Virus record (IMG/VR): IMGVR_UViG_3300042566_001780
Location: 62,001-126,000 of that record
Direction: 5' to 3' (one strand)
Length of the DNA: 64,000 bases
The translations under genes and the position numbers were made by a program. Below, one piece after another: positions 6,479 through 47,634 of this stretch. Each line of letters starts with the position of its first letter. Positions within the stretch are counted from its first letter, which is position 1. The notes beneath the pieces were generated by a model. The model ran no database searches. It had not been told where the DNA came from and was given only the letters and a program-made list of their open reading frames with translations.

Positions 6479-8161
6479 GTGAGTAATTATGCTGGTATGT
6501 GGCGTATTGTAACGCCAAAAACGCGAAAGCAATTTTACACTACATTGTCTACTGACGCATATGATCCGCGAGCTACAGATTTGAGCTCAATGTCGTCGCT
6601 AACATGGTATTCTCAAGTGATGCGCGGGCCTGGTTCGCGGGTTCAATCATACAAGCAATATGACGTAATGGACGCAGACATTGATATTGCTCGTTCACTT
6701 GACATTATTGCTGAAGAAATTGCTACTCGTGATGAGAAGACTAATTTGCCATTTGTGATTGAATGGCAAAAAGAAGACAATCAAGACATTACTGATTCTA
6801 CTATTGTTACTGTTCGCGCTGCGCTGCGACAGTTTTCGCAGCTTCAAGATTTGAAGAAGCGAATGTTCAACATTGCAAGAACTATGGTCAAATATGGCGA
6901 TTGTTTCTTTAGAAAAACCTCTGATACAAAGCGCTGGCAATATATTGATCCATCTTTGGTATATGGTATTGAGATTGACGAAAACGGAGCTGCTATTGCA
7001 TATCATATTCGGCGTCCGGCTTCTGCAAATAATGCGCCTTATGGCTCAATCAAGAATGAATTCTTAGATATTGTGCCTGCATCAGCCATTATTCACTTCA
7101 CCATGTCTGATGACATGGGTGACTCTGCGCCGTTTGGACAAAGCATTTTACGGCCCATATATCGAGTATACCGCCAATTGGCTATGCTTGAAGATGCAAT
7201 GATCATTTATCGAATTGTCCGTGCTCCAGAAAGACGAGTATTCTACATTGACGTTGGTAATATGAACCAGCATCAGGTAAAGAGGTACTTGGAACAAGTT
7301 AAAAATGAAATGCGCCAGAAAAAAGTTCCAGGTACTGGAATTAATGGTGGCCGTGATACTGTTGATGGGCAGTACGATCCGCAGTCTATGCAAGACGATA
7401 TTTTCATGGCGGTTACAGCTAATGGCAGAGGATCTCGTGTTGAAACTCTTCCAGGTGGTACTGAAGATTTTGGCACTAACTTGCTTCGTCAATTCCAAGA
7501 AAAAATCTTCCGTGGTCTTCGTATTCCAACTTCTTATCTAGGCGGTACTGATGCGGCGGGTGCCCAAACCAATGATGGTAAAGTAGGTATTGCCTATATT
7601 GAAGAACTTCGTTTTGCTAATTTCATTTCTCGCTTGCAACAACGAATCAATGATGTTTTTGATGCAGAATTCAAAATCTATTTGAAAGTAACAGGTCTTC
7701 GAGTAGATGATGAAGTATTTGACATTCGCTTACCTGACCCAGCAAACTTTGCACTATATCGCCAGGCAGCGCTTGATGCGGATCTAATTAACTCATTCTC
7801 TAACATTCAAGAAGTCAAATTCTTATCTCGTCGGTTTATCCTTAAGCGTTATTTGGGTCTTTCTGATGACGAAATTCAAATGAATGAAACAATGATTAAG
7901 GAAGAGCGAGCAATTGAAGATACTGATGATACTTCTGCAATGCAGCAAATTTATGATCCAGCAGTATTTGATAATCGCGAGCCAATTTCGATCGTAAAGC
8001 CAGATGAATCTCTAAATTCATCAAACACTGATAGCTTTAACTCGCCAGAAGATGAAATGGGAATGTCTGGCGAAGAACCAGCACCAGAAGAGACTCCTAT
8101 GGCTGGTGAACTAGATGATACTGGTATTGAAGATAAACCGCCTGCTATTCCTATAGCTTAA
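6479..8161 (+). CDS. portal vertex protein, T4 gp20-like
   Basis: LEDAMIIYRIVRAPERRVFYIDVGNM, VETLPGG, EELRF; acidic tail. Confidence 0.95.
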   Translation: MSNYAGMWRIVTPKTRKQFYTTLSTDAYDPRATDLSSMSSLTWYSQVMRGPGSRVQSYKQYDVMDADIDIARSLDIIAEEIATRDEKTNLPFVIEWQKEDNQDITDSTIVTVRAALRQFSQLQDLKKRMFNIARTMVKYGDCFFRKTSDTKRWQYIDPSLVYGIEIDENGAAIAYHIRRPASANNAPYGSIKNEFLDIVPASAIIHFTMSDDMGDSAPFGQSILRPIYRVYRQLAMLEDAMIIYRIVRAPERRVFYIDVGNMNQHQVKRYLEQVKNEMRQKKVPGTGINGGRDTVDGQYDPQSMQDDIFMAVTANGRGSRVETLPGGTEDFGTNLLRQFQEKIFRGLRIPTSYLGGTDAAGAQTNDGKVGIAYIEELRFANFISRLQQRINDVFDAEFKIYLKVTGLRVDDEVFDIRLPDPANFALYRQAALDADLINSFSNIQEVKFLSRRFILKRYLGLSDDEIQMNETMIKEERAIEDTDDTSAMQQIYDPAVFDNREPISIVKPDESLNSSNTDSFNSPEDEMGMSGEEPAPEETPMAGELDDTGIEDKPPAIPIA

Positions 8162-8167
8162 CCTAAT

Positions 8168-8200
8168 AAGGGAAAGAATTGAAGAAATTCTTTCCCTTTT
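8168..8200 (+). terminator. intrinsic terminator after portal
   Basis: AAGGGAAAGAATT-GAAGA-AATTCTTTCCCTT then TT. Confidence 0.8.
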
Positions 8201-8210
8201 CATTTCATTG

Positions 8211-8218
8211 CTAAATAG
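8211..8218 (+). promoter_or_regulatory. late promoter CTAAATAG
   Basis: Upstream of the prohead protease. Confidence 0.65.
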
Positions 8219-8237
8219 AAAATAGTGTCAATGAATA

Positions 8238-8864
8238 ATGTTTTGGAGTGAAAACATGCAATTATTAGTGGAACAGTTAATGCCGTCTGCAGCTCAAATT
8301 ATGGAGCAAAAGATCGGTTCTGATCTTTATCTTTCTGGCATCATGATGCAAGCAGATGTGGTAAATGGAAATCGTAGAAAGTATAAGCTTTCTGAAATAT
8401 CTAAAGTAGTTCAAGAAGCTCAAGCAAAAATTGCTGCAGGCAATTTTATTCTAGGTGAATTAAATCACCCTGATAACCTGTCAATAAATTTAGCTAACGT
8501 GTCGCATGCTATTACTGAAATCCGTATGGATGGCAATAATGCTATTGGCAAAATGAAGCTGCTAAATACCCCGGCTGGCAATATTGCTAAAGCTATTTTA
8601 GAAGGCAATGTCCGTTTGGGTGTTTCTTCACGTGGTACCGGTAATGTAAATGAATCTGGCGATGTATCAGATTTCTCATTAGTTACTGTTGATATTGTGT
8701 CTACTCCATCTGCCCCTGATGCATATCCTTCTTTAGTATCAGAAGCTTTAGAAAATAAGAAAATTTTGACTTTAGCTGAAGCTGTGGTGCATGATCAAAA
8801 AGCACAAGACTTCTTTAAGAAAGAAATGACTAATTTCATTTCCAATTTCTTTGCAAAGAAATAA
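8238..8864 (+). CDS. prohead core protease, T4 gp21-like
   Basis: GELNHP, NVSH, LGVSSRGTG, DIVSTPSAPDAY. Confidence 0.95.
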   Translation: MFWSENMQLLVEQLMPSAAQIMEQKIGSDLYLSGIMMQADVVNGNRRKYKLSEISKVVQEAQAKIAAGNFILGELNHPDNLSINLANVSHAITEIRMDGNNAIGKMKLLNTPAGNIAKAILEGNVRLGVSSRGTGNVNESGDVSDFSLVTVDIVSTPSAPDAYPSLVSEALENKKILTLAEAVVHDQKAQDFFKKEMTNFISNFFAKK

Positions 8865-20444: not shown

Positions 20445-22013
20445 TTAGAGACGAACTAATTTGTGGTTGCCACAATCGAGCAACTTGATGAACTTGTTCC
20501 TACGCATGTTCTCATCTTCAGTGACATTTGGATCGAATGATTCTCCAAGCAATTCTGGAAGCTTGCTCTTCATCGATTCATAACGTGTCACGATCCCAAA
20601 TCTCGGATGGAACCAAGAATAGCCAGGTTGAGTTTGCTTGACGTGGTTGAATCCAGATGCCAAATAACCAGCACCATTTGAAAACCGAGCATCAGCATAA
20701 GTCAAAATTGGACCATCTACTAAGCTCATCAATTTGCTAACACCACCACGAACACTAACATTTTCTTTGAAGCACATCCTGAGCAGTTCAAGCCCTTCAA
20801 ATTTCTCGAACCTAGGTTTCCCAAAGGTGGCTACTCCAACTAATTCATTTTTGAAGAACAATCCCAACTTCAAACTAGATCGGCATGAACCTTGCAAATG
20901 GTAAGTTTCCAAAAAATCTGAACTAGTTTGAAGATCAATTTCTCTCACTTCACACTGTCTTGCATTCAACTTTCGTTCAGCTTTTCCCAACTTGGACCTA
21001 ATTATAGATTTGATAATGGATTGCTTTTCACTCCATTCATAATCCCAAATGTGAATGACTTGCACTCCTGCTTTTTCTGCCATTAATGATTTCTCAAGCA
21101 AGCCAATTTTGCCAGATTCATCATGATGCCAATAGACACCATTCATCTCTATTGCGATGTTTTTCTCGGGGATGACAATATCAAGTTCTTTTGGTGCTAT
21201 GATTTTTCGGTCATTTCTTAAACATTCAAAACCCAAAGAGCTAACAAAAGAAAATAGCTCTTTTTCAGGTTTAGATTGCCCGCAACATCCAGGGCATCTT
21301 AGCTTTTCAAATAATCCTAAATTGAACTCATGCCCACACTCATGCTTAACTTTAACAAAATCACTTGTTAAGTTGATAATGTCAAATTCTTGTTGAACTC
21401 GATTTATGAATTTTTGCAGTTGAATCTCATGTAATTTTGGCAACAAGATTGATGAGGACCAGGAGCAGGAGCTTTCTGCCCCGTACCGGCTCATCATAGT
21501 AGAACGCATTTTTGCATTTAGCTCAGCAGATTCGGTAGTGAAACCCCCAAACTTTTCTTGCATTGTAGAAGCAATTTGCTTTCTTATTGCTGCAACTTTT
21601 AGCGGGTGATCAACACCATAACGAGATAAGCATGTTTCTTTAGTCTTTGCTCTATGCAGTTCTGTCTTTGCAAAATTGTCTGCACCATACCGTGAAACCA
21701 TAGTAGAAGCTGATTTCTGCCTAACTTCCTCAACTGCCAATGTACTTCTCACCCCATAACGCTCTACACACGTAGATTCAATGGAGTTGAGTCTCTTCTC
21801 TTTCACCCTCTTCGAAGATGAAGCACACTCAGCAGAACAAAAATCCCGATAGCCTTTCATGAAGGAAAGAAAAGCCGTCTTCCTTCCACATTCACAAACT
21901 TTTTCTGAAATGCCGTTCAACGCAACATAAATGAGTTCAGAAACCGTGTCAAACTTTCCATGAACCTTCTCTAGTTCATTAATCAATTCTTTGTTTCTAG
22001 AAGCGGATGCCAT
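20445..22013 (-). mobile_element. Hef-like homing endonuclease (repeats, Vsr-like nuclease, GNAT-like domain)
   Basis: TCxxRYG repeats; ELDIVIP..AIEMNGVYWH; ELLRMCF..GGVSKL..TYADARF. Confidence 0.8.
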
Positions 22014-22095: not shown

Positions 22096-22103
22096 TATTT
22101 ATA
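22096..22103 (-). promoter_or_regulatory. T4-type late promoter TATAAATA
   Basis: Exact consensus, upstream of the Hef-like endonuclease. Confidence 0.65.
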
Positions 22104-22108
22104 CCAGC

Positions 22109-22116
22109 TATAAATA
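22109..22116 (+). promoter_or_regulatory. T4-type late promoter TATAAATA
   Basis: Exact consensus 30 nt before the terL start. Confidence 0.75.
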
Positions 22117-22146: not shown

Positions 22147-22512
22147 ATGGCTAAAAATCCAGGTTTAAAACGCGCTCATGAAACCGATGAGTATACCCAA
22201 GAAATGATTATGGAATTACAGAAGTGTTCTGTAGATCCAATTTATTTCATGGAGAAATATGTAAAAGTGCAACACCCCGTAAAGGGATCTGTGCCATTTG
22301 TTCTTTATGACTACCAAAAAGAAATGGTAATGGGGATACATGAGAATAGATCTACAATTTTGCTCCTGAGTCGCCAACTGGGAAAGTGTTTTTTTGGGTC
22401 CACAAAACTGCTAAATATTGTTAAGCCAACGGGCTTTAAAAAATATTTACTTAAGTTATTGGACAAGGAAACATATGACAACTTATTTCGCCCAAGCTCT
22501 ACAGAAGAATAA
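22147..22512 (+). CDS. terL: terminase large subunit part 1 (80 aa) plus split intein 1 N-fragment (41 aa, from 22387)
   Basis: DPIYF..LYDYQ..SRQLGK followed by intein block A CFFGST. Confidence 0.9.
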   Translation: MAKNPGLKRAHETDEYTQEMIMELQKCSVDPIYFMEKYVKVQHPVKGSVPFVLYDYQKEMVMGIHENRSTILLLSRQLGKCFFGSTKLLNIVKPTGFKKYLLKLLDKETYDNLFRPSSTEE

Positions 22513-23572
22513 AACCAAAACTCTTTTCACCAATTTGAATAAATGCCCAGTCTGCGAATCTACATTTTCAGATAATGAAGGTCATGGCAAATTTTGCTCT
22601 AAAGCGTGCTCTTCTAAAATAGAAAAGATGTGCATAATTTGCAATAAGAAAATTATTAGCAAAAAGCCTGACAAATTTTGCTCTAAGGCATGTCGTGATG
22701 TACCTGGCAAAATTAAACTAAACGAAAAGAGAAAAGCTGAAGGCGGAGTGCAATGTCTTATTTGCGGGGATTATGGTAAATCATTAGCATTACATCTTAA
22801 GAAACTCCATAACATTAGTGCTGAAGATTATCGAAATCAGTATGGTGGTAAAACAGTATGTGAATCTACTTCCACTAAGCTTTCTGAATTAACATCTGGA
22901 GAAAACAATCCATGGTATAACCACGGTGGTACTATTTCTCCATTCTCCAAGAACAACAAAAAGTTCATTGGTCTTTCTGAAGAAGAAAAACAGCAGAAGG
23001 TTAATGAAGCAGTTGATGCTTATATCAAAACTACCCCAAAAGAAAATCGTCCGATGAATGTTGAGTATTGGATCAAACGCGGTATGACTGAGGAAGAAGC
23101 AAAAGCACAAGTTTCTAAAAGACAAACTACTTTCAGCTTAGAGAAATGTATTGAGCGCTATGGTGAAGAAGCAGGTAAAGCTCGTTGGCAAGAACGGCAA
23201 GAAAAATGGCACAAAAATTATAAAAAGAGCAATTACAGCCAAGTCTCCCAAAGATTATTCTTTAACCTAGTTGAAGAATATCCTGATGCTATGTTTGCTG
23301 AGCACGGTTCTGAATTTGTCTTTAGGACCAAAACGGGATCAGTTTTCAAATTAGATTTTTGGGTACCATCTTCTAAACATTTGATTGAATTTGATGGTGA
23401 CTATTGGCATGGAAAACGAGATGCAATCGCAAACCCTAATAGGTCAGCTAATAGAGATAAACAAATTTTAGAAACAGATAGTGAAATAAAAATCTTACAC
23501 GTCAAAGAGCGCGATTTCTACAAGGATCCAGAAGGAACAATCCAAAAATGCAAAGACTTCTTAAAAACTTAA
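22475..23572 (+). mobile_element. free-standing Vsr-like homing endonuclease inside fractured terL
   Basis: Zn-finger repeats, KRQTTFSLEKCIERYG, LDFW..IEFDGDYWH; AAGGA RBS; CTAAATA at 22411. Confidence 0.8.
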
Positions 23573-24642
23573 AGCAGCGTCTTATTGATTGGTGCTTGCA
23601 GAAACAAGAAATTACCATCAAAGAACTTTTTCAATCATCAAATCCTTACCAAGTTTCCATTGATGATCTTACTGGAAATTTGAAATTTGTCCAAGAAGGC
23701 CATACTGAACGGTTAGTCCAAACTCCAACAGGCTGGGCACCTATCAAACGAGTTCTCCAAACTGTGCCATATCAAGCATGGCAATTGCGTGTTGATAGTT
23801 TAGAACCATTGATTGCAGCAGATGAGCATATCATTATGACTGAATCTGGCGAAAAATGGATGAAGGACTTATCACCCGGAGATTTAGTTCATACTATTAA
23901 TGGACTAAAGCCCGTTGAATCTATTCAAAATTTGGATAGATATGAAACTATGTATGACTTGGAATTAGATGACGATGGTCACGTCTTCTACACCAATGGT
24001 ATTTTGAGCCATAATACGACAGTAGCAGCCATGTATATTCTATGGTTTGCTACATTTCATGCGGCAAAAAGATGTGTCATTGCATCTAAAGCAATGAACC
24101 ATGCTGTGGAAATTATGTCTCGTATTAAATTTGCTTACGAGGAATTGCCGAGCTGGATTAAAAGTGGCTGTACCTTCTATAATAGAACTAGTATCGAATT
24201 TTCAAATAAATCTGTCATCGTTTCTGAGGCAACATCAGAGAAAACAGGTCGAGGTTCTTCGCCATCTATTATTTTCCTTGATGAGATTGCGTTTATTTCG
24301 CGCAGAATTCAAGAAGAAATGTGGAGTTCTTTAACTCCAGCATTAAGTACGGGCGGCAAATTTATTGTAACCTCTACACCTAATGGAGATTCTGATCTAT
24401 TTGCTACATTATGGCGTGGAGCAAATGCTGGTACAAATGGTTTTACGCCAATGCAGTTCTTATGGTGGCGCCATCCTGATCGAGATCAGGCTTATTATGA
24501 CGATATGGTTGGGAAACTCGGGCCGGTAAAATCCGCCCAAGAGTTAAACTGTGCCTCATATGACACTCTATTAGACACTTCTATAGGTAATTTAACTATT
24601 GAAGAGTTGTATACGCGGTTGTGCGGCAATCAGGGAGAGTAA
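23548..24642 (+). CDS. terL: intein 1 C-fragment (156 aa), terminase part 2 (178 aa), intein 2 N-fragment (30 aa)
   Basis: MYDLE..NGILSHN/TTV; Walker B IIFLDE; STPNG; AQELN/CASYDT. Confidence 0.9.
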   Translation: MQRLLKNLKQRLIDWCLQKQEITIKELFQSSNPYQVSIDDLTGNLKFVQEGHTERLVQTPTGWAPIKRVLQTVPYQAWQLRVDSLEPLIAADEHIIMTESGEKWMKDLSPGDLVHTINGLKPVESIQNLDRYETMYDLELDDDGHVFYTNGILSHNTTVAAMYILWFATFHAAKRCVIASKAMNHAVEIMSRIKFAYEELPSWIKSGCTFYNRTSIEFSNKSVIVSEATSEKTGRGSSPSIIFLDEIAFISRRIQEEMWSSLTPALSTGGKFIVTSTPNGDSDLFATLWRGANAGTNGFTPMQFLWWRHPDRDQAYYDDMVGKLGPVKSAQELNCASYDTLLDTSIGNLTIEELYTRLCGNQGE

Positions 24643-24644
24643 GT

Positions 24645-25751
24645 ATGGCATCAAATCAAACAATTGCACTCAATTATGAAGGCGTTAAAGTTCTTACCCC
24701 AACTGGTTATCAGTATTTTACTGGTATAAGCAGATCCTGGCATGAAGAAATTATTGAGATAAAGACGGCAAATAGAAGTATTAAAGCCGGAGTAAAGCAT
24801 AAATTCTTAACTTTAGATGGTTGGGTCCAATCTAGAGATTTAAAAGTTGGCGATGCTTTAGTCAATAATCAATGTGAAGATGAATGCATTACTGAAATAA
24901 ACATCTTAGCTGAACCTCAGTGGATGTATGACTTATTAGATGTTGAGTCCGGTAATACATATGTAGCTAATGGGCTTATTTGTCATAATTGCGAGTTTCT
25001 CTCAAGCGATGCGCTGCTAATTAGCTCGGTAAAGCTGCATCAAATCAAATATGAAAAGCCTATTTTTGAATCAATGGGATTTAAATTTTGGGTACCAGAA
25101 GAAGCGCTTGGTGGTAAAGGCAAAATATATCTAGTAGGTTTAGATCCAGCTACTGGGGGCGGGAATGATTTTTCTGTTATCGAAATATTTGATTTTCCTG
25201 GGTTAAATCAAATTGGAGAATTTCGCTCTAATGAAATCAACATTCCATTATTGTATGCTAAACTGTCGTGGATTTTAAAGAAGCTTACAGCCAATGTCAA
25301 TGGTGGCATTGCTGAAGTATCATGGACATTTGAGCGTAATGGCATTGGCGAAGCGATTGGTGCGTTATACTTTAATGATGAGAAACAAGTTGAAGAAGCA
25401 GATTTGTTTAATGATCATCATACAAAGTTTGGGGTGTATACAACTGGAAAAACGAAGATTTTGAATTGTTTGCAGTTGAAGACACTGGTTGAAAAGATCC
25501 ATAATGGTTTGAACATCAAGAGCGAACTGCTTATACATGAACTGAAGAACTTTGTGGCAAAGGGTGGTGGGTATGAGGCCAAGTCGGGTTCTACGGATGA
25601 CGCGGTGATGGCGACGATCTTGATCATGCGGTTGCTAAAGCGGCTTTCAGAGTATAATGAAGAAGCTTTTTCAACAGTCCATGAGTACGTTGACCCGAAT
25701 GCCGACATACCTGCAGAAGATTCTGATTCACCTCTGCCAATAATTCTATGA
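24645..25751 (+). CDS. terL: intein 2 C-fragment (115 aa) plus terminase nuclease domain (253 aa)
   Basis: GGGAG RBS; MYDLL..NGLICHN/CEFLSS; GLDPATG, FERN, DDAVMA. Confidence 0.9.
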   Translation: MASNQTIALNYEGVKVLTPTGYQYFTGISRSWHEEIIEIKTANRSIKAGVKHKFLTLDGWVQSRDLKVGDALVNNQCEDECITEINILAEPQWMYDLLDVESGNTYVANGLICHNCEFLSSDALLISSVKLHQIKYEKPIFESMGFKFWVPEEALGGKGKIYLVGLDPATGGGNDFSVIEIFDFPGLNQIGEFRSNEINIPLLYAKLSWILKKLTANVNGGIAEVSWTFERNGIGEAIGALYFNDEKQVEEADLFNDHHTKFGVYTTGKTKILNCLQLKTLVEKIHNGLNIKSELLIHELKNFVAKGGGYEAKSGSTDDAVMATILIMRLLKRLSEYNEEAFSTVHEYVDPNADIPAEDSDSPLPIIL

Positions 25752-38271: not shown

Positions 38272-38320
38272 ATTTGTCTGCAAAGACATTTTTTAACTTT
38301 TCAAAACTTTAGGAGTTTTT

Positions 38321-39244
38321 ATGACAACCAAACGTTCCCTTGCTGATCTTGCTGCTGCTTTTTCTTCCAAAGCTAATGAAGGCGGATCCAGCCCCACTTG
38401 GAAGCTTTTCTTCAATTTCTGGAAAGCTCCTGTCGATAGCGTATCCACTGTTCGTTTCTTGCCTGATGCTAATCAAGATAACCCTATGGGTTTCCTTGTT
38501 GAAAATCTAGTGCATGAGCTGACGATCAATGGCAAACGCGAAAAAGTGCCTTGCTTGAAGATGTACGGTGAATCTTGTCCAGTTTGTGAGCTTTCTGCTC
38601 AATACTACGATGAGAAGAATCCGCTGCATTCTGAAGAACTTGGTAAGAAGTTCTATCGTAAAAAGTCTTACATTGGCCAAGTGCTTGTGATTGACACTCC
38701 CGTTGAACATGATGGTGACCAACTTGTCAAGCTAATTGAATTCGGTCCTCAGGTCTTTAAGCAAATCCAAGCTGCATTCCAGTCTGGTGATCTTGAAGAA
38801 GCCCCCTATGAGCTTAAGGGTGGTTACAATTTCCGTTTCCGTAAGACTTTGACTGGCGCAGGTCAGAATTCTTACACCACTTCTAACTTTGCTCCTAAGC
38901 AAACTGACGTAGCAGACGATACGCTGAATGCAATTACACTGTATGATCTTTCTCAGTATCGCACTCCGAAAATGGATCGCACTGCTTTGGAAGCTATGCT
39001 CGTAGCTGCTCAGACCGGTGAAAGCTATACTGCAGAATCCGATGCTCCTGCTAAGACTGCAGACACAGTGAACAAGCTTCGCGATCGTCTTGCACAATCG
39101 GCCGATGCTGATGATGCTCCTGCGGCAGAAACTCCTAAGGCATCTGCTCCTGAAGAGTCGTCTGGTGGCAACAAGCAATCTGTGGTGGAAATGCTTCGCG
39201 CACGTGCTGCAGCTGCTAAGGCTGCACAGCAAGCTGCTCAGTAA
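38321..39244 (+). CDS. single-stranded DNA-binding protein, T4 gp32-like
   Basis: VRFLPD, H..C..CPVC zinc site, GYNFRFRK, Y..SNF. Confidence 0.9.
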   Translation: MTTKRSLADLAAAFSSKANEGGSSPTWKLFFNFWKAPVDSVSTVRFLPDANQDNPMGFLVENLVHELTINGKREKVPCLKMYGESCPVCELSAQYYDEKNPLHSEELGKKFYRKKSYIGQVLVIDTPVEHDGDQLVKLIEFGPQVFKQIQAAFQSGDLEEAPYELKGGYNFRFRKTLTGAGQNSYTTSNFAPKQTDVADDTLNAITLYDLSQYRTPKMDRTALEAMLVAAQTGESYTAESDAPAKTADTVNKLRDRLAQSADADDAPAAETPKASAPEESSGGNKQSVVEMLRARAAAAKAAQQAAQ

Positions 39245-39257
39245 TTTTTACTAGCAC

Positions 39258-39295
39258 GAGGCCCATCTTGTTTACTCGAGATGGGCCTTATTTTT
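39258..39295 (+). terminator. intrinsic terminator
   Basis: GAGGCCCATCTTG..CGAGATGGGCCTT then ATTTTT. Confidence 0.75.
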
Positions 39296-39317
39296 CTTTG
39301 ATTTTTGGAGAATAATT

Positions 39318-39593
39318 ATGGGTTTACCATTTTTAGACAAGTTTAAAAAAGAAGTTGCTAAGCTTGAAACGGTTGGCGTCGGCATTAAAGAAACAGAAGT
39401 TTGGTTGAGTACTGGCAATTATGCATTGAATCGCGCATTGTCTGGTGATTTCAAAAAAGGCGTTCCGCTCAGTAAGATCACCCTGTTCGCGGGTCCCAGT
39501 GGGTGTTTGCCGGCTGATGAGAAGGTTGGAATTTATGTTTTTAAATCGCAGCCCTCAATAACAACGCCAATCTTTTTTGAAGAAAAAAAGTAA
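39318..39593 (+). CDS. uvsX: UvsX/RecA part 1 (62 aa) plus split intein N-fragment (29 aa, from 39504)
   Basis: STGNYALNRALSG..FAGPSG then CLPADEKV. Confidence 0.9.
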   Translation: MGLPFLDKFKKEVAKLETVGVGIKETEVWLSTGNYALNRALSGDFKKGVPLSKITLFAGPSGCLPADEKVGIYVFKSQPSITTPIFFEEKK

Positions 39594-39601
39594 AAAGTGT
39601 G

Positions 39602-39634
39602 ACGCTCCTATAAATAGCTTATTTATAGGAGCGT
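39602..39634 (+). promoter_or_regulatory. late promoter TATAAATA in a perfect 15-bp hairpin that covers the endonuclease RBS
   Basis: ACGCTCCTATAAATA-GCT-TATTTATAGGAGCGT; ATG at 39638. Confidence 0.8.
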
Positions 39635-39637
39635 ATT

Positions 39638-40879
39638 ATGACAGCAAAACTTTACGATTTATTTCTTCATGCTAACACTGGCAAAAAACCAGTTAAACCG
39701 AGACCATTAGTATCTTTTGAAACATTTAAAGACATAATTCTCTCAAATATCAGTAATATATTTGAAGATGATGCGTTTTTAAAAAATAAATATGATCAAT
39801 ACTGTGCTTTATATAACAGTACAGTGTTAACAAAAATTAGTGGTGTAGCAGCTATTTTAGGATTTGAATCAAAAAATACATGCTTAAATTATTGGCTTTC
39901 ACGTGGATGGCCCGCAGATATTGCATTAGAAAAACATCGAAATAGGCAAGCTACAGTTAAATTGGCAAATATAGCCAAATCGCACAATGTTTCAATGTCT
40001 GAAGCTAAAAGAATAAAAACTGAGAGACTTAATCGTGGAATAGAAACATTAAAAAATAAAAGCAATTACGATGAAATTTGCTATTCGCGTGGAAATAGTA
40101 TGCGAGTTTCATATTATGAAACTAAAATAAATCCCAAAACTGGAAATTTATATACGTCTAAAGAGGCAGCTGATTTAATTGCGCAAAAATCAGCAAAAAG
40201 AGCAACTAAATTTTGGGATGATGTACGCGCTGGGAGAAAAATTTATGATGCTTCGACATCGCTAAATTATTATCTGAAAAAGGGTATGACAGAAGATGAA
40301 GCGCGGGCAGCTTTAACCAAGAGGCAAACAACTTTTTCTAAGCAAATATGCATAGAAAAACATGGACATGATAAGGGATTAGAAATATTTAATAAAAGAC
40401 AGGAAAAATGGTTGGCTACTTTAAATTCTTTTTCTGATGAAGAGAAACAAAGAATTTTAATAGCAAAAACCAGTAAATCAAAATCATATTCTCAAGAAGC
40501 TACTAAATTTTTAATTAAACTTTTGGATAAACTTGGCATTTCTAGAAACTCAGAATATGTTAAAATGTGTGATAACGAAATGTTTTTATGGTCGCGAGAT
40601 AAAAAGATAGGTTTTTATGATTTAGCAATTGTAAATTTAAAAATAATTGTTGAATACCATGGATCATCATTTCATCCAAATCCAAATTTATCTGAGGATC
40701 AATTAAAATGCTGGATAAACCCAATTACTAAGGTGAGTGCATATGATCAAAGAAAAAGAGATTTTCAAAAACTGATAACTGCAAAAGAGCATGGATATAC
40801 AGTGTTTGAAGTTTGGGACGCAGACGATCATGATTCAAAAATTATTGAAATTTGTAACTTTATAAAGGAAAAACTATGA
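39638..40879 (+). mobile_element. free-standing Vsr-like homing endonuclease inside fractured uvsX
   Basis: KRQTTFSKQICIEKHG..RQEKW; YDL..IVEYHGSSFH..GYTVFEVW; locally very AT-rich. Confidence 0.8.
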
Positions 40880-42312
40880 GTACTTTTACCGCTGAAGTGA
40901 TGTTAGCAGAGTTGTTAGCTAATTTTTCATCGCAAGATTTGATCAAGAAAATTGGTATTTCTAAACCAACACTTAAAAAGCTTTATGATGGTGAAGCTAG
41001 CAATGAAGTGTTGTTTAAACTAGAACAGGCTTTTTTGGCACATGTAAGAGCAAACATTAAACAGATTTCGATGTCAAATTTAAAGTCGATTTTGGAATCT
41101 GGTAATACTGTAATGGTGGATACGCCTGATGGGCCTCAGGCGATTATTAAATTTTTTAATAAAGATGCTAGGTCTATTGTTAAACTCAGCACAGCAAATG
41201 GAAAAACACTAACATGTTCAAATGACCATTTAGTTGAAACTGATTTTGGGTGGGCGTATGCAAATAAAGATGTAGTTGGCAAAAATGTACTAACTGGTGA
41301 AGGCTTTAATCCTGTAATTAAAGTTGAAGACCTAGCACCTGAACCCGTTTTCGACTTTGAAGTAGCACATCCAAACCATCGTTATTGGGGCGGTGATGGT
41401 ATTTCTTCTCACAATTCTGGAAAATCCTTCATAGCTTCCAATCTTGCATTGCAGGCTCAAAAAGATGGATACCATGTTCTGTATCTTGACTCCGAGCATG
41501 CTATTGATGTTGATTATCTGAAGAAGATTGGTGTTGACGTTAGTGAAGATAGTCTTACATATCTCTCAGTCACTACCATTGAAGATGTCAACTCGGTGCT
41601 TTCCGAATTCTTTAGTGGGTATGTTAAGGCGTATGGTAAGGATTCTACGACTGCACCCAAAACCCTGATTGTTCTTGATAGTCTTGCTATGTTGAGTTCT
41701 GCTACTGAGATGGAGAACTATGACAAAGGCGGCATCATTAAAGCGGACCAAGGTATTCTCGCAAAACGTCGTAAAGCAATGCTTCGACTAGCTACTGGTC
41801 ATTTGGGTCGGTTGCCAGTCAACATGGTGATTACCGACCACGTGTACCCCGCTGATATTATGGCAGGTGACGGTGCATGGGCAATTACAAACTCCACTAA
41901 ATTCTCATCTTCAATTATTGGTATTGTCACAAAGCTCAAGCTAAAAGAAGAAGGTGAAATTACTGGTGTTCGCATGCGTTTTGAAACGTATAAGAGCCGA
42001 TTTGCAAAGCTTGGCACTAAGGTTGAGCTTGAAGTTCCTTATAACAAGGGAATGAGCCCTTTTAGTGGATTGCTTCCGCTTCTTGAAAGCATGGGAGTTA
42101 TTGCTAAAGGTACTAAGCCTGGTGAAAAGCTTCTTTGGGTATGCGAATGGACAGATGAAGATGGCGAAATTCATGAAGTCAAGTTCAAGGAAAAAGATTT
42201 GACTGATGACATTGTTCAGGAACTTCTTAAGCATCCTCTTTGCGCTGCAACAATGGCTCGCCCAGCTACTAAAGAAGATGAACCTTCTCTTGAAGATGAC
42301 GATGTAGAGTAA
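40876..42312 (+). CDS. uvsX: HTH-like segment plus split intein C-fragment (180 aa total), then UvsX part 2 (298 aa)
   Basis: TCSNDH, VFDFEV..SSHN/SGKS; YLDSE, IVLDSL. Confidence 0.9.
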   Translation: MSTFTAEVMLAELLANFSSQDLIKKIGISKPTLKKLYDGEASNEVLFKLEQAFLAHVRANIKQISMSNLKSILESGNTVMVDTPDGPQAIIKFFNKDARSIVKLSTANGKTLTCSNDHLVETDFGWAYANKDVVGKNVLTGEGFNPVIKVEDLAPEPVFDFEVAHPNHRYWGGDGISSHNSGKSFIASNLALQAQKDGYHVLYLDSEHAIDVDYLKKIGVDVSEDSLTYLSVTTIEDVNSVLSEFFSGYVKAYGKDSTTAPKTLIVLDSLAMLSSATEMENYDKGGIIKADQGILAKRRKAMLRLATGHLGRLPVNMVITDHVYPADIMAGDGAWAITNSTKFSSSIIGIVTKLKLKEEGEITGVRMRFETYKSRFAKLGTKVELEVPYNKGMSPFSGLLPLLESMGVIAKGTKPGEKLLWVCEWTDEDGEIHEVKFKEKDLTDDIVQELLKHPLCAATMARPATKEDEPSLEDDDVE

Positions 42313-42316
42313 GCAT

Positions 42317-42338
42317 GCACGGGGGAATTCCCCCGTGC
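42317..42338. terminator. GC-rich palindrome/terminator
   Basis: GCACGGGGGAATTCCCCCGTGC. Confidence 0.55.
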
Positions 42339-42352
42339 CTTAACTGATTACC

Positions 42353-42832
42353 ATGGCAAAAAACTCAATTAATCTTTTCGCTTTAGGTCTAACTTTTGAT
42401 CAACTTTCAGGCGAGCTGTTATCTTTCTTCACTCAATGGTCTGAAGAGATTGCACAAGCTGAGCCAATTTTTGACATTAAAGGTGCGCATCTTGAAAAAG
42501 TAACTCGTGATGTACCGCACCACCAATCTTTCTATTCGCAAAGAGCAGCAGAAGCAAAAGCTGTTGTGAAATGGTTGGAGATCTTCAAATCTCAAAAAGA
42601 GTCAAAGTATTTGAAGAATTACAACAATTCGCCTCGGGCTCTCGGTGTTAAAGAGCAAGCAATTTATTTGCAGGGTGAAAAAGAAATTGTTGAAATTAAT
42701 CAATTGTTAGTTGAGGCAAATTTGAGAATGCAACAATTTGAAGAGATTGTCGAAGCAATCAAACAACTGAGTTGGACATGTTCAAACATTGTCAAGCTTC
42801 GAGTAGCAGAACTTACCGACATTGTGATCTAA
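42353..42832 (+). CDS. uvsY: recombination mediator UvsY-like
   Basis: Helical 159 aa between uvsX and uvsW; ends SNIVKLRVAE. Confidence 0.75.
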   Translation: MAKNSINLFALGLTFDQLSGELLSFFTQWSEEIAQAEPIFDIKGAHLEKVTRDVPHHQSFYSQRAAEAKAVVKWLEIFKSQKESKYLKNYNNSPRALGVKEQAIYLQGEKEIVEINQLLVEANLRMQQFEEIVEAIKQLSWTCSNIVKLRVAELTDIVI

Positions 42833-42833
42833 C

Positions 42834-44276
42834 ATGAAAACTGCGCATATTTGGGTAAAAGACGAAGTCTGGATGACAGTCACAGGTCTTGAATCTGCCG
42901 ACTCAACATTCTTATGGAACTATTTTGGAATTGAAGTCGAAGGTTCTTGGTACATGCCAGCTCGCAAGCTTGGCCGGTGGGATGGAAAGATTCGTTTCTT
43001 TGATAAGACTGGCAAAATTTATTTGCGGCTACTTGAGGAAGTGCTTCCATTTCTTGAGAAATGGGGTTACGAGATTGAGCTGCACGATGAGCGTCGCCCA
43101 GTGCCAATCATTACGGCTCGAGCTACTGAGAATATGTTTGATGGCAAATCTCAAGTGCCTATCAAAATCCGCCCTTATCAGCTTGAAGCTGTCAATGCCG
43201 CTCTTGAAAACGGGTCAGGTATTGTTTTAGCGGCTACTTCAAGTGGCAAAACTATTATGTGTGCTGCTTTGTGTGAAGCGCTTGGCAGCCATGATATTCG
43301 TTGTTTGCTGATTGTTCCATCTGCTGATCTTGTTGACCAAACTGTTAATACATTCAAATTAGCAGGTGTTGACGTTGGTACGTATAGTGGAAGCAAAAAA
43401 GATTTAGCGCATCAGCACATTGTGGCTACTTGGCAAGCTCTGCAAAATCAGATGCATATTGTCTCAAATCCTTCCTCTCCAGGTATTGAGCTTGAGCATC
43501 GCGGATTCAATTGCTTGATTGTTGATGAGTGCCACGGTGCTGCAGCTAAAGTTCTTGGAGAGCTGATCAACAATCATGGGCAGCATATTGCATATCGTTT
43601 TGGATTGACTGGTACTTTACCAACTCCAAAAACGGATATGTATACCATTCGTGGATCACTTGGAGAAGTCATTTATGAAATCTCTGCAGCCACGTTAATG
43701 GAACAAGGTTACCTCGCGCAAGTTGAAATTCAGCCTGTTGAGATTCAAGAACTTGCAGATGAAGATTTTCCAGATTACACATCTGAAAAAGCATTCATTT
43801 CCCGCCAGCCAAATCGTCTAGATTTTATTGCTGATTACATTATTGATAGGGCTAATGCTCACGGAAATACCTTGGTGTTGGTGAATAACATCAAACAGGG
43901 TCAACAGCTTCATAAGCTTATTAAAGATTCCGTATTTTTGTATGGGGCTACAGAAAACGAAATTCGAGCTGAATGGTATTCGACTTTTGCTAACCGCGAT
44001 GACTTGATTGTGATTGCTACATTCGGTATTGCAAGTACTGGCATTTCAATTGATCGGATCTTTTGCTTATTCATGATTGATTCTGGAAAGAGCGCCATTA
44101 GAACTATTCAATCTATTGGACGTTCTCTAAGAAAAGGTCATGATAAAAATAGTGCTAAAGTTTATGACGTGTACTCATCTTTGAAATGGGGCAAAAAACA
44201 TGCAAGAGAACGCGTAAAGTATTACAAAAAAGCTCTATACCCAGTGCTAAAGGCCATTAAAGCAAAACTATCCTGA
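42834..44276 (+). CDS. uvsW: SF2 DNA helicase UvsW-like
   Basis: WDGKI, RPYQ, ATSSGKT, DECH, GLTGT, QSIGR. Confidence 0.92.
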   Translation: MKTAHIWVKDEVWMTVTGLESADSTFLWNYFGIEVEGSWYMPARKLGRWDGKIRFFDKTGKIYLRLLEEVLPFLEKWGYEIELHDERRPVPIITARATENMFDGKSQVPIKIRPYQLEAVNAALENGSGIVLAATSSGKTIMCAALCEALGSHDIRCLLIVPSADLVDQTVNTFKLAGVDVGTYSGSKKDLAHQHIVATWQALQNQMHIVSNPSSPGIELEHRGFNCLIVDECHGAAAKVLGELINNHGQHIAYRFGLTGTLPTPKTDMYTIRGSLGEVIYEISAATLMEQGYLAQVEIQPVEIQELADEDFPDYTSEKAFISRQPNRLDFIADYIIDRANAHGNTLVLVNNIKQGQQLHKLIKDSVFLYGATENEIRAEWYSTFANRDDLIVIATFGIASTGISIDRIFCLFMIDSGKSAIRTIQSIGRSLRKGHDKNSAKVYDVYSSLKWGKKHARERVKYYKKALYPVLKAIKAKLS

Positions 44277-44919: not shown

Positions 44920-47634
44920 ATGATCAAAACAATTATCAAGCGCAATGGATCTCGTGAACAATTTAATGCAGCAAAGCTAAATGGCTGGGGAGAATGGGCA
45001 GCACGCAAACTAGGCCATCTAGTTGATTGGCCTGCAGTAGTATTGCATGCAGTTAGCACTCTACCAGAAGATTGTACTAGTGAACAGCTGCAAAATGCGC
45101 TTATTGATTTTTGTTTGGCTAAGAAAACTTGGGAATACAACCTGATGGCTGGTCGGTTGTATGCTGCACTAATGTCTAAGCAAATTCATGGTCGTAAGAA
45201 GCCATCTATTAAAGATCTGCAAACTGCATTGTTCAATGATGGCTTGATGGCTCAGCTTAATTATTCTGATGAAGAATATGAGCAGATTGAGAAAATGATC
45301 AATCATAATCTTGATCTGAAAAGCTCACATTATGAATTGCAACAGATTCGTTACAAATATGCCCTTCGCAATAAAGTGACTGGTAAAGAATACGAAACTC
45401 CACAGTTCACGTATATGCGCATGGCTATGGCTCTTGCAGAAAATGAGCCAAAAGAAAATCGCATGACTGATGTTGCTAAATGGTACGAGCATCTTTCACA
45501 TAAGCGCATCAATGCTCCGACACCTTACTACACTAACCTTGGCACTACTCATAACGGTTATGCATCGTGCTGCGTGTATACAACGGGTGATACGGCTCCT
45601 TCTCTTGCCGCTGGCGATCATATTGCTTATATGATGACGGTGATGAGCGCCGGTATTGGTTCGCATATCAAAACCCGGTCACTTGGAGATCCAGTGCGTG
45701 GCGGCCTCATTAAGCACCAAGGTAAAATTCCATACTATCGCGCATTGGTCGGTGCTATTGGTGCAAACTTGCAAAATGGCCGGGGCGGCGCAGCTACTGT
45801 CCACTACACCGCGTATGATCCAGAAGTTGAAGTTATTGCAAAGCTCAAGAATGCAATGACACCAGCTGCTAAGCAAGTTCGTGGCTGCGACTACAGTTTT
45901 GGATCTAACAAGTTCTTCGCAAAAATGGCTGCGCAGGATAAAGAAATTGCCACCTTCTCTTATCACGATGCTCCTGAACTCTATGAAGCACAGTATGACG
46001 GCGATTCCACCAAATTCGAAAGACTTTATGAAGAATTTTTAGCTTCAGAAAAAAAGCGCACAGTTTTTTCTGCGCGCAAAATTCTTATAAGCGCTCTTGA
46101 AGAGGCGTATGAAACTGGCCGCCATTACCTGCACTTCACTGATACTATCAATAAGCATACACCTTTCAAGGAAAAGATTTATTCCTCGAACCTGTGTCTT
46201 GCGGGTAATACTTTAGTTAAAGCTAAGATTGATGGCTTTGAACGTGAAGTTACTCTTGAAGTTCTAGATGATGCATTCTGGGCTGGTGCTTCTATTGAAG
46301 TTATGTCGATGAATGATAGCACAAAGATTCGCGAGTACAAAAAAGTGGTGGCATCTAAACTGATGCGTCGCTCTGCAGAAGTTTTGTCTATCAAAGATGA
46401 ACTGTTTAGCAATGAGATTGTTTGCACTGGCGATCACAAAGTGTATACAGTTAATCGCGGCTATGTGGAAGCTAAAGATCTTCTGCCAAGTGATGCCCTT
46501 AATGTCAATGGCGAAATTAGCTTTGGCGTGATTAAAACCGAATTGCAAGATCGCATTGATGTCTATGACATTACTGTTGAAGACAACCACAATTTTTATG
46601 CAAACAATATTCTGGTGCATAACTGCCAAGAAATTGCTTTGGTGACCAAACCATTCAAGTCAGTGCAGCAGCTGTATGAAGATTACACCGAGGACTCTGG
46701 CGAAATCGCTCTTTGCAATATTGCCGCTATCGTAGTCTCAAACATTGAGAATGATGCTCAATATGATGAAGTTGCTTATTACACATTGAAGATGATTGAT
46801 GTAGGTATTCATAAGAGCACCTACGTCTTTAAGGCTCTTGAGCAAACTGCAAAAGCCCGCCTTAATGCTGGTGTTGGAATGATGGGTGTTGCTCATCTAA
46901 TGGCAAAAAATGGTAAGAAGTATTCTTCTCAAGAAGGTAAAAACTTTATGCATGAACTAGCAGAAACTCATGCATGGCATGTCATCAATGCTTCTCTGAA
47001 GCTTGCAAAAGAAAAAGGCAATGCTCCATGGATGCATAAGACCAAGTGGCCTGAAGGGTGGTTGCCAATTGACACGTATGAAAAGAAAGTCGATAGTTTA
47101 GTGACTGTTGAAAATAAGCGTGATTGGGAATCTCTTAGAAAAGAAATCATTGCCAATGGTGGCATTCGTAATTCTGTCTGTATAGCCTTCATGCCGGGTG
47201 AGTCGTCAAGTTTGTCGAGCGGAACCACTAATGGCCTATATCCAATCCGAGATTTTGACCTTGTTAAGACTAGCGATACTATGGCAGTCAATTACGTAGT
47301 ACCTGATGCCACGAAGCTCCGCGATAAATATGAAATAGCCTGGGATGTTCCTACCACTGATCTAATTCATCATTATGCAATTGTCCAAAAATGGACAGAT
47401 CAAGCAATTAGCGCTGATCTTTATCGCAAGATTCAAGGTGATGATACGGTTGGCACTACTGAAATGATGGAAATTTATTTCAATCTGGTACGCTATGGAA
47501 TTAAGACCCGCTATTACCAAAATAGCTTGACTGCAAAGGGTATTGATCTTAATTCATCTGAAACAAATGATGATGCCCAAGTTATAATTAACGACTCTGA
47601 TGATGAAGCTAATTGTGAAGGCTGTTCTCTATGA
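44920..47634 (+). CDS. nrdA: class Ia ribonucleotide reductase alpha subunit with cis mini-intein
   Basis: ATP cone IIKRNG, ASCC, SSNL/C.EI, MPGESSS, C-terminal CEGC. Confidence 0.95.
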   Translation: MIKTIIKRNGSREQFNAAKLNGWGEWAARKLGHLVDWPAVVLHAVSTLPEDCTSEQLQNALIDFCLAKKTWEYNLMAGRLYAALMSKQIHGRKKPSIKDLQTALFNDGLMAQLNYSDEEYEQIEKMINHNLDLKSSHYELQQIRYKYALRNKVTGKEYETPQFTYMRMAMALAENEPKENRMTDVAKWYEHLSHKRINAPTPYYTNLGTTHNGYASCCVYTTGDTAPSLAAGDHIAYMMTVMSAGIGSHIKTRSLGDPVRGGLIKHQGKIPYYRALVGAIGANLQNGRGGAATVHYTAYDPEVEVIAKLKNAMTPAAKQVRGCDYSFGSNKFFAKMAAQDKEIATFSYHDAPELYEAQYDGDSTKFERLYEEFLASEKKRTVFSARKILISALEEAYETGRHYLHFTDTINKHTPFKEKIYSSNLCLAGNTLVKAKIDGFEREVTLEVLDDAFWAGASIEVMSMNDSTKIREYKKVVASKLMRRSAEVLSIKDELFSNEIVCTGDHKVYTVNRGYVEAKDLLPSDALNVNGEISFGVIKTELQDRIDVYDITVEDNHNFYANNILVHNCQEIALVTKPFKSVQQLYEDYTEDSGEIALCNIAAIVVSNIENDAQYDEVAYYTLKMIDVGIHKSTYVFKALEQTAKARLNAGVGMMGVAHLMAKNGKKYSSQEGKNFMHELAETHAWHVINASLKLAKEKGNAPWMHKTKWPEGWLPIDTYEKKVDSLVTVENKRDWESLRKEIIANGGIRNSVCIAFMPGESSSLSSGTTNGLYPIRDFDLVKTSDTMAVNYVVPDATKLRDKYEIAWDVPTTDLIHHYAIVQKWTDQAISADLYRKIQGDDTVGTTEMMEIYFNLVRYGIKTRYYQNSLTAKGIDLNSSETNDDAQVIINDSDDEANCEGCSL
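46195..46623 (+). mobile_element. 143-aa contiguous mini-intein in nrdA
   Basis: CLAGNT..CTGDH..VYDITV..ILVHN/C. Confidence 0.92.

Follow-up and report, generated by a model that had tools for sequence, protein, structure and literature searches.

An XRE-type helix-turn-helix domain at the split point of an intein in a fractured phage uvsX gene

A stretch of phage DNA of 64,000 nucleotides (hereafter the window; positions 62,001 to 126,000 of IMG/VR virus record IMGVR_UViG_3300042566_001780, which comprises 291,687 bp and stems from lake water) carries a gene for the recombinase UvsX that is broken in two by an endonuclease gene and whose product is predicted to be rejoined by a split intein. 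We found that the C-terminal intein fragment (IntC) begins with a 60-residue domain that lies outside the Hint fold and is a real helix-turn-helix (HTH) domain of the XRE type. The first open reading frame (ORF) of the locus, ORF A (39318-39593, 91 aa), consists of 62 residues of UvsX and 29 residues of the N-terminal intein fragment (IntN). It is followed by a free-standing homing endonuclease gene (HEG, ORF B) and by ORF C (40876-42312, 478 aa), in which a 180-residue IntC ending in GISSHN precedes 298 residues of UvsX starting with SGKS (Table 1). Splicing is predicted to yield a UvsX of 360 aa (62 + 298) with a Walker A motif restored as GPSGSGKS from the halves GPSG and SGKS. The neighbours are gp32 upstream and UvsW downstream. 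The same layout, a HEG between two host-gene parts that each bear an intein half, was found in at least 20 related loci. This anatomy had been outlined in an earlier note made from the DNA letters; all its coordinates and lengths agreed to the residue with our reading frames and sequence.

We take the locus for a fractured uvsX gene and the phage for a large T4-like one from fresh water. According to our best explanation, an intein of the VidaL type that occupies the UvsX P-loop was invaded, directly behind block A, by a HEG for a Vsr-like nuclease; UvsX would consequently be translated in two parts, which protein trans-splicing would join again. The HTH would be an accessory domain with two jobs. 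Helices 1 and 4, together with the start of the Hint core, would hold the extra-long tail of the 29-residue IntN and act as a helical platform, offering a larger docking surface to a very short IntN. Helices 2 and 3 would form an exposed, DNA-binding HTH that serves the homing-endonuclease phase, helping the nuclease to find or handle its target in the manner of the HTH-like accessory domains of endonuclease-bearing inteins; alternatively, it might dampen endonuclease expression. After loss of the HEG, the HTH would decay. Taken as a whole, from the rejoined halves to the DNA-binding role, we give this explanation an even chance.

Table 1 Features of the fractured uvsX locus and of the terL locus in the window
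Feature	Position in the window	Strand	Basis
UvsX N-extein, 62 aa, ending FAGPSG, the first Walker A half	39318..39503	+	sequence read; phrog_97 (UvsX-like recombinase) E = 5.6e-10
IntN, 29 aa, CLPADEKV... to EEKK, and stop codon	39504..39593	+	sequence read
Exchanged block: IntN tail, hairpin, HEG, HTH and Hint core up to block F	39528..41346	.	contigs of runs X4 and X5
Hairpin before the HEG, perfect 15-bp stem, 3-nt loop	39602..39634	+	fold -21.2 kcal/mol, z = -5.1 vs shuffles
Free-standing HEG, 413 aa	39638..40879	+	
Four-helix Cro/XRE-type HTH domain at the split point, IntC residues 1-60	40876..41055	+	
Helix 2, turn and helix 3, the HTH proper, residues 19-37	40930..40986	+	predicted secondary structure; motif comparison across alleles
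Hint core, IntC residues 61-180: N2 helix, block B with H118, block F with D160, block G ...SSHN	41056..41415	+	
UvsX C-extein, 298 aa from SGKS, and stop codon	41416..42312	+	Pfam RecA E = 1e-11; phrog_97 E = 4e-28
terL N part ending SRQLGK, and IntN starting CFFGST	22147-22512		
384-aa Vsr-like HEG with zinc-finger-like repeats	22418-23572		
IntC ending ILSHN, terL middle part, and second IntN starting CASYDT	23548-24642		
Second IntC ending LICHN, and terL C part	24621-25751		

Results and discussion

The N-terminal domain of IntC

The earlier note had pointed out that the first 55 or so residues of IntC resemble a Cro/XRE-type HTH and are not Hint sequence, and this resemblance was borne out by profile and structure searches. 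Pfam HTH_26 matched IntC residues 1-64 with 22.5 bits (E = 1.4e-4) at a cut-off of 22, and dropped below the cut-off in longer contexts (20.6 bits with the 180-aa IntC, 18.5 bits with the whole ORF C). Among the relatives, P0020, P0142, P0112 and L266 passed HTH_3, and L044 and L094 reached HTH_26 with 22.0 and 22.7 bits, respectively. A profile built from 20 homologous N-terminal domains retrieved HipB from the PDB (E = 2e-5), as well as a PbsX-family regulator, the 434 repressor and SinR. An AlphaFold2 model of IntC(1-186), calculated with 37 relatives as input, reached a mean predicted local distance difference test score (pLDDT) of 93.5 and showed the HTH fold with helices at residues 6-16, 19-26, 30-37 and 43-59 and a pLDDT of 95-98 over residues 11-60. 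The same helices were obtained when the domain was modelled alone (pLDDT 83.6). Nearly all Foldseek neighbours of this isolated domain were XRE proteins, including the controller protein C.Kpn2I, HipB, 434 Cro, P22 c2 and DdrO, and a structure search of the ESM Atlas likewise returned almost only XRE/Cro-C1 neighbours. Template-modelling scores ranged from 0.55 to 0.68 over both searches; the Foldseek neighbours scored 0.55-0.64 at a root-mean-square deviation (rmsd) of ~2 Å. The weak Foldseek E-values (at least 0.17) can be ascribed to the domain having only 60 residues. The domain thus shares sequence profile and predicted fold with Cro/C1 (XRE) proteins such as HipB, 434 repressor and Cro, and the controllers of restriction-modification systems, but it differs from them in being fused to an intein half and in having four helices instead of the usual five.

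Two suggestions on the origin of the domain could be examined. Descent from the DNA-binding modules of the neighbouring endonuclease was rejected by hhalign comparison of the two family profiles (probability 0.1%). The idea, put forward in the note, of a relic of a former intein endonuclease region was not supported as worded: the domain sits at the atypical split point after block A rather than at the canonical B/F site, and it is intact here. It is in HEG-less relatives that the HTH resembles a decaying relic. No paralogue of the HTH was found elsewhere in the phage genome at E ≤ 1, and a link of the HTH to splicing control or localisation, likewise suggested in the note, did not emerge from this analysis.

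The intein family and its three classes

The residues expected of a class 1 intein are present. Cys63 of ORF A follows directly upon GPSG, within block A, and the CLP...V block is common to all relatives. IntC contributes H118 (block B, T-x-x-H), D160 (block F), H179 and N180, all four invariant in alignments of 15-38 sequences, and Ser181 as the +1 nucleophile. In a Foldseek search with the IntC model, 58 intein or Hint structures were matched at E ≤ 1e-3. The Hint core came closest to the VidaL intein (PDB 6VGV; E = 2e-11, 42% identity, rmsd 1.5 Å), and the sequences of the two were linked by phmmer with E = 3e-24. VidaL (PDB 6VGV/6VGW) thus is the nearest solved relative; it shares the fold and the split point just after block A, and its solved chain ends in ...SHASGK, the same P-loop junction as in the window intein. 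Since this chain ends in SGK and the VidaL IntC sequence matches alleles in UvsX-like genes (L022 and L034, both with an IntN of 16 aa), we place the window intein in the VidaL family, which is split after block A and resides in the UvsX P-loop; statements on the origin of VidaL rest here on the PDB sequence and the matching loci. In contrast to the window allele, with 60 additional IntC residues and an IntN of 29 aa, VidaL and the VidaL-type alleles lack an N-terminal extension and have an IntN of 15-17 aa, and the two types fall into separate clades on the tree of Hint cores.

The family counts ~240 representatives in a library of 1.8 billion proteins and hundreds of loci in viral and metagenome contigs. 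By the sequence that precedes the N2 helix, three classes could be told apart: one without any extension (IntN 15-19 aa; examples are VidaL and the intein of Pseudomonas phage PA5oct), one with a two-helix stub of ~40 aa, and one with a full extension of ~55-70 aa, to which the window intein belongs. Contiguous, that is unsplit, inteins occur in every class (those of Salicola phage SCTP-2 and of L039 without extension; L067 with the stub; P0050 and P0040 with the full extension), and in P0050 and P0040 the extension lies between block A and the N2 helix. The extension therefore was inserted in the very loop where the family is split and did not arise as a by-product of splitting, and to judge from these sequences the 60 residues belong to the intein.

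On the Hint-core tree, the extension-less inteins formed a clade of their own (98/90), and the window intein fell into a clade of 14 whose members all bear full-length extensions (98/83). HTH-bearing lineages appeared in three groups among the extension-bearing inteins, one of them nested among stub alleles. An old HTH that has repeatedly decayed would fit this topology best. Three kinds of sequence had been left out of the tree: proteins in which over 100 residues of an unrecognised N-extein precede the intein, Hint segments below 90 aa, and sequences without a TPDG-like anchor (e.g., P0050).

Several members of the family deserve mention in their own right. L007 (P0005) and P0022 are contiguous UvsX inteins of the window clade in which inserts of another kind, 60-130 aa long, separate block A from the N2 helix; no HTH signal was detected in these inserts, which may be scars of HEG loss by in-frame fusion. 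A further member, protein P0010 (locus L020/L105, IMGVR_UViG_3300025030_000039), carries the extension together with a 430-aa HEG in the P-loop of a PhoH-like ATPase (...GKAG|C ...). As the family also occurs in this gene, the element has moved between different P-loop hosts. In the cultured jumbo phage PA5oct (L001, NC_071039.1 134722-137728), uvsX is fractured likewise, into an 81-aa N part with a 17-aa IntN, a 477-aa Vsr-like HEG, and IntC with the C part. The first two of these genes are annotated as 'hypothetical protein' and the rest as 'UvsX-like recombinase'; a literature search found no paper on the fractured uvsX of PA5oct.

Exchange of the whole block between phage genomes

We mapped public contigs onto positions 38300-43300 of the window. 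The window allele was found in two river samples (X2 and X3) at ~98% identity. Contigs from a freshwater sample with ~99% identical flanks (X4) and from wastewater (X5) diverged from it after position 39527 and rejoined it at 41347. The sequence that takes its place is the HEG-less split allele of locus L182 (protein P0008), in which helix 3 of the HTH is absent and Pfam gives no match. A direct comparison of L182 with the window showed flanks of 92-95% identity around an unalignable segment (39536-41340) that measures 1.8 kb in the window and 0.5 kb in L182. X2 and X3 also contained minor contigs of the L182 kind; the two alleles hence occur side by side within one sample. From the contig breakpoints, the exchanged unit extends from IntN residue 9 to IntC residue 157, with junctions in the conserved blocks A and F. 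The allele swap shows IntN tail, hairpin, HEG, HTH and most of the Hint core being exchanged together among phage genomes. Such a swap is what would remain when a nuclease cut is repaired from a diverged donor; its direction may have been either. Comparison with L009 (77% identical flanks) gave an ambiguous mosaic, as fast divergence could mimic replacement at this distance, and we settled the mosaic question with run X4 and locus L182 only.

Helices 1 and 4 and the predicted docking of IntN

Helix 1 (L-x-E-L-x-x-x-Y) and helix 4 (L-x-x-x-F-x-x-H-V) are kept in every relative that has any extension, and helices 2-3 are found intact, shortened by nine residues (P0008, P0009) or absent, as in the stub class. 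The 29-aa IntN of the window consists of the block A hairpin and a tail of 14-16 aa, and extension-type IntN fragments share a V-Y-V-F-K-S/T continuation followed by a tail. IntN is longer where the extension is present, with a median of 26 aa (n = 33 unique split loci) versus 15 aa without it (n = 28; Mann-Whitney p = 2e-10), a comparison that is largely one between two clades. When ORF A residues 50-91 were modelled together with IntC residues 1-190, the predicted complex scored an ipSAE of 0.89 versus 0.00 for the best control, a mark that was reached by 51 of 78 solved complexes and by 2 of 108 mismatched pairs. The runs agreed in at least 85% of contacts, with a partner pLDDT of at least 64. 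As a like complex (VidaL) has already been solved, the Hint part of this score may reflect memory. The predicted interface comprises IntC residues 4, 8, 11-12, 14-16, 57 and 60-67 and IntN residues up to 88, with none of IntC residues 19-56, including the HTH proper (19-37), taking part. We infer from this model that the IntN tail rests on a platform made of helices 1 and 4, and that the HTH proper faces another way.

The HTH signature and the presence of the HEG

To each allele with a full-length extension we assigned the best HTH_3 or HTH_26 score of its N-terminal domain and the state of its HEG, with scores of at least 16 bits counted as a signature. With an intact HEG, 11 of 14 alleles carried the signature, the window allele scoring 22.5; the exceptions were L020, L210 and L340, of which the latter two still match other HTH families. 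Without a HEG, the signature was present in one of seven (L014, 17.5 bits, a close relative of HEG-bearing alleles), and where a mere HEG remnant was left, in one of two (L023 with 21.2 bits; L096 has 15.0). Alleles without a HEG were more acidic and no longer had helix 3 or, within it, the T-[LIV]-x-x-[LIF] pattern. In an earlier subset, Fisher's test of HTH against HEG gave p = 0.003, and five sister contrasts judged by eye all pointed in the same direction. Three further scans added more HEG-bearing lineages and zero new clean HEG losses. Across these alleles, the HTH thus appears to persist mainly, not strictly, alongside the HEG.

Weighing the two-job explanation against its alternatives

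A number of observations speak against the explanation that we favour. The clamp is drawn from a structure prediction, and since its output does not list the IntN residues that touch helix 1, the platform role stays an inference. The tendency of HTH and HEG to occur together comes down to only two independent pairs on well-supported branches, or four when all branches are counted, too few for a sign test to reach significance. Many two-helix-stub relatives carry an intact HEG, so the nuclease does not need the HTH, and the contiguous P0050 keeps a good HTH (20.0 bits) without any HEG. HTH and HEG are also adjacent in one exchanged block, so that shared age could mimic shared function. Finally, helix 3 is only mildly basic, and the net charge of the HTH segment ranges from -2 to +2 across the HEG-bearing alleles.

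Alternatively, the domain may be a purely structural cap, an XRE-like bundle that stabilises the nearly complete, open Hint fold of IntC and captures the short IntN without binding DNA; its HTH signature would then mirror no more than the needs of the fold. The universal retention of helices 1 and 4 and their place in the predicted IntN interface, the increase of IntN length with the extension, and a HTH segment that is not strongly basic are all in line with this idea, as are natural alleles without helices 2-3, which are common and keep all splicing residues. The last observation cuts both ways: helices 2-3 have repeatedly been deleted and are thus dispensable, yet HEG-bearing lineages that are only ~29% identical in IntC still reach or approach the Pfam HTH cut-offs, and their HEG-less sister alleles lose the signature. 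We therefore regard a cap without DNA binding as possible but doubtful. At the other end, one may go further than an accessory domain and suppose that the excised split intein is a working DNA-binding protein, which acts in trans with or upon the free-standing HEG as targeting or accessory subunit or as repressor, and that intein, HTH and nuclease are a selected three-part mobile module. We raise this tentatively, as a rather unlikely extension.

A more specific role was suggested by the perfect palindrome in front of the HEG, which the note had proposed as a binding target. If the HTH bound this 33-bp palindrome over the TATAAATA promoter, whether as part of the precursor or of the excised intein, it could halt transcription of the HEG, much as restriction-modification controller proteins act and as I-TevI does at an operator over its own late promoter. 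The palindrome indeed covers a promoter-like element, with TATAAATA in the 5' arm of the hairpin at 39609-39616; the best structural neighbour of the domain is the restriction-modification controller C.Kpn2I; autorepression has a precedent in I-TevI (PMC2988022); and it is chiefly alleles with a HEG that retain the HTH. The 3' arm of the hairpin, however, contains the Shine-Dalgarno sequence of the HEG (AGGAG, 39627-39631, 6 nt before ATG), and hairpins of this design with an embedded late promoter are documented in fractured genes and before T4 I-TevI, segB and mobE, where they block the ribosome-binding site on early transcripts and free it on late ones (PMC2677866, PMC2988022). By analogy, an RNA hairpin that hides the ribosome-binding site of the HEG and contains the late-promoter-like TATAAATA, presumably active as such, would suffice to explain the palindrome. 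PA5oct, L004 and L020 have HEG hairpins of the same design, in PA5oct next to an IntC without HTH, and a (T/G)ATAAATA element lies 22-33 nt before the HEG start in PA5oct, L004 and L008. With four G.U pairs in its stem, the L004 hairpin is under selection as RNA and not as a DNA palindrome, and differences in the arms from locus to locus do not visibly follow those in helix 3. An HTH operator is thus not needed to explain the palindrome; I-TevI autorepression keeps the idea from being absurd, and we consider a dedicated HEG repressor improbable.

In the likeness to T4-type HEG control (I-TevI, segB, mobE; PMC2988022), with a hairpin over the ribosome-binding site and, inside it, a late promoter whose transcripts are unable to fold the hairpin, the window is a candidate case; it differs in that TATAAATA is rare, with 16 sites in the 292-kb genome (G000) versus ~40 expected from base composition. 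For eight of the 16, an ORF start follows after 19-31 nt; several of these ORFs are mobile-element-like genes and one is terL. One of the ORFs concerned has a GIY-YIG-like N-terminus and two have MerR-like HTH N-termini. Within the 64-kb window, TATAAATA is confined to the uvsX hairpin and a back-to-back pair before terL. The extended motif CTCCTATAAATAG has only two more copies in the genome, both ahead of the start of an ordinary ORF. Late genes of the phage itself may rely on a different form of promoter. A search for RNA evidence of late transcripts yielded no RNA run with the sequence.

The HTH could also be a functionless passenger, neutral and physically linked to the HEG in the mobile block, young in the window allele and bound to decay. 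Repeated decay and deletion in the relatives and the location of HTH and HEG within one exchanged block agree with this, and the HTH-HEG association is not significant once relatedness is considered. The persistence of HTH signatures across Hint cores that are ~30% identical is hard to square with neutrality, though, and a very confident model and a score above the curated Pfam cut-off speak against it as well; we hold a mere passenger to be very improbable.

That IntC might in truth start downstream, e.g., at the in-frame ATG of residue 66, and the 'HTH' be an untranslated leader is practically excluded by the conservation of the 60 residues as protein in dozens of relatives, contiguous inteins with internal copies among them, by the AAGGA 7 nt before 40876, by the ATGA overlap of IntC start and HEG stop that is typical of coupled genes, and by residues 57-67 in the predicted IntN interface. 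The start at 40876, the first start codon of the frame, as assumed in the note, was accordingly retained; the relatives begin within a few residues of the same point. Met9 is a possible alternative start that would keep the HTH.

The nuclease and other inteins of the genome

ORF B appears by its sequence to encode a Vsr-like homing endonuclease. Alignment of nine homologues showed D328, E339, G342, H346 and D375 near the C-terminus to be invariant, in a pattern (...YD...EY(H/N)G..(F/W)H...D) as in Vsr-like/EDxHD enzymes. The protein matched phrog_22677 (E = 3e-10), and its ESM Atlas neighbours carry DUF559, Vsr and NUMOD3; Pfam gave no match, and phmmer and a family-profile search against the PDB returned nothing credible. 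The frames of HEG and IntC overlap by 4-35 nt in the window and in most HEG-bearing loci. At L008 (3498-3503), HEG and HTH-bearing IntC lie in one reading frame, a TAA stop being directly followed by ATG. A GC-rich inverted repeat (GCACGGGGGAATTCCCCCGTGC) at 42316-42340, directly 3' of the uvsX stop codon, probably is a transcription terminator or an RNA-stabilising hairpin.

The window holds further inteins. The gene for the large terminase subunit (22147-25751) is in three pieces with two more split inteins (Table 1); no HEG separates its last two pieces, and the second intein presumably resembles the atypically split AceL/GOS-TerL type. A 522-aa HEG-like ORF with a Vsr-type motif (20445-22013, minus strand) diverges from terL, the two being separated by back-to-back TATAAATA elements (22096-22116). 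NrdA (904 aa, 44920-47634) contains a contiguous mini-intein (SSNL|CLAGNT ... ILVHN|CQE), so that at least four inteins (uvsX, two in terL, NrdA) lie within 26 kb. Outside the window, G000 has an intein match at 8073-8483 on the minus strand, with one internal TGA, and a HEG paralogue at 274502-275092. In two related phages, Hint/PT-HINT matches revealed an intein in the UvsW helicase (L003, 6345-8147; L006, 5447-7303); uvsW of the window (42834-44276) contains no intein.

Relation to known systems

Already known are fractured genes, VidaL-type UvsX inteins, control by hairpins and, for inteins that have a nested nuclease, accessory domains resembling an HTH (PMC8966425). The locus shares with the fractured genes of Dassa et al. 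(2009, PMC2677866) the phage origin, split intein halves that flank a free-standing, apparently Vsr-like HEG, overlapping frames, an RNA hairpin with TATAAATA before the HEG, and the existence of HEG-less split alleles. It differs in that UvsX was not among their eight host enzymes, that all their inteins but one were split at the canonical site, and that no DNA-binding domain on an intein half was described there. In the TliVMA and PI-TkoII inteins, HTH-like accessory domains modulate cleavage (PMC8966425). With these and with the DNA-recognition region of PI-SceI the window intein has in common a small HTH-like domain on a Hint fold, a homing nuclease in the element, and the linear order of nuclease, HTH and rest of Hint. 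Their nuclease, however, is nested in-frame at the B/F site with the accessory domain on the same polypeptide, whereas the nuclease of the window is a separate ORF of another family, with its own start and stop, inserted after block A, and the HTH is on IntC. The window HTH thus falls outside the class of these accessory domains, and the likeness is one of logic and gene order. According to a full-text literature search, what is new is the XRE-type HTH at the atypical split point of a split intein, on IntC beside a free-standing HEG; also new are the bipartite behaviour of the domain, an HTH that tends to survive only in the company of the HEG, and an exchange of the whole block at the level of populations.

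Implications

For annotation, the locus is a reminder that in large phages a gene such as uvsX or terL may be annotated piecemeal as 'hypothetical', which has happened in PA5oct. Split inteins with a very short IntN, such as VidaL and AceL-TerL, are valued tools in protein engineering. From a natural relative with a putative helical platform and an elongated IntN tail one may learn how the affinity of the fragments is raised or how an open IntC stays soluble. The family also offers a natural series, from contiguous inteins with HTH, through split inteins with HEG and HTH and split inteins without HEG and with a decaying HTH, to the two-helix stub. Since both main alleles segregate in near-identical phages, it can be tested directly who benefits from accessory DNA-binding domains of inteins: the nuclease, the host or neither of them.

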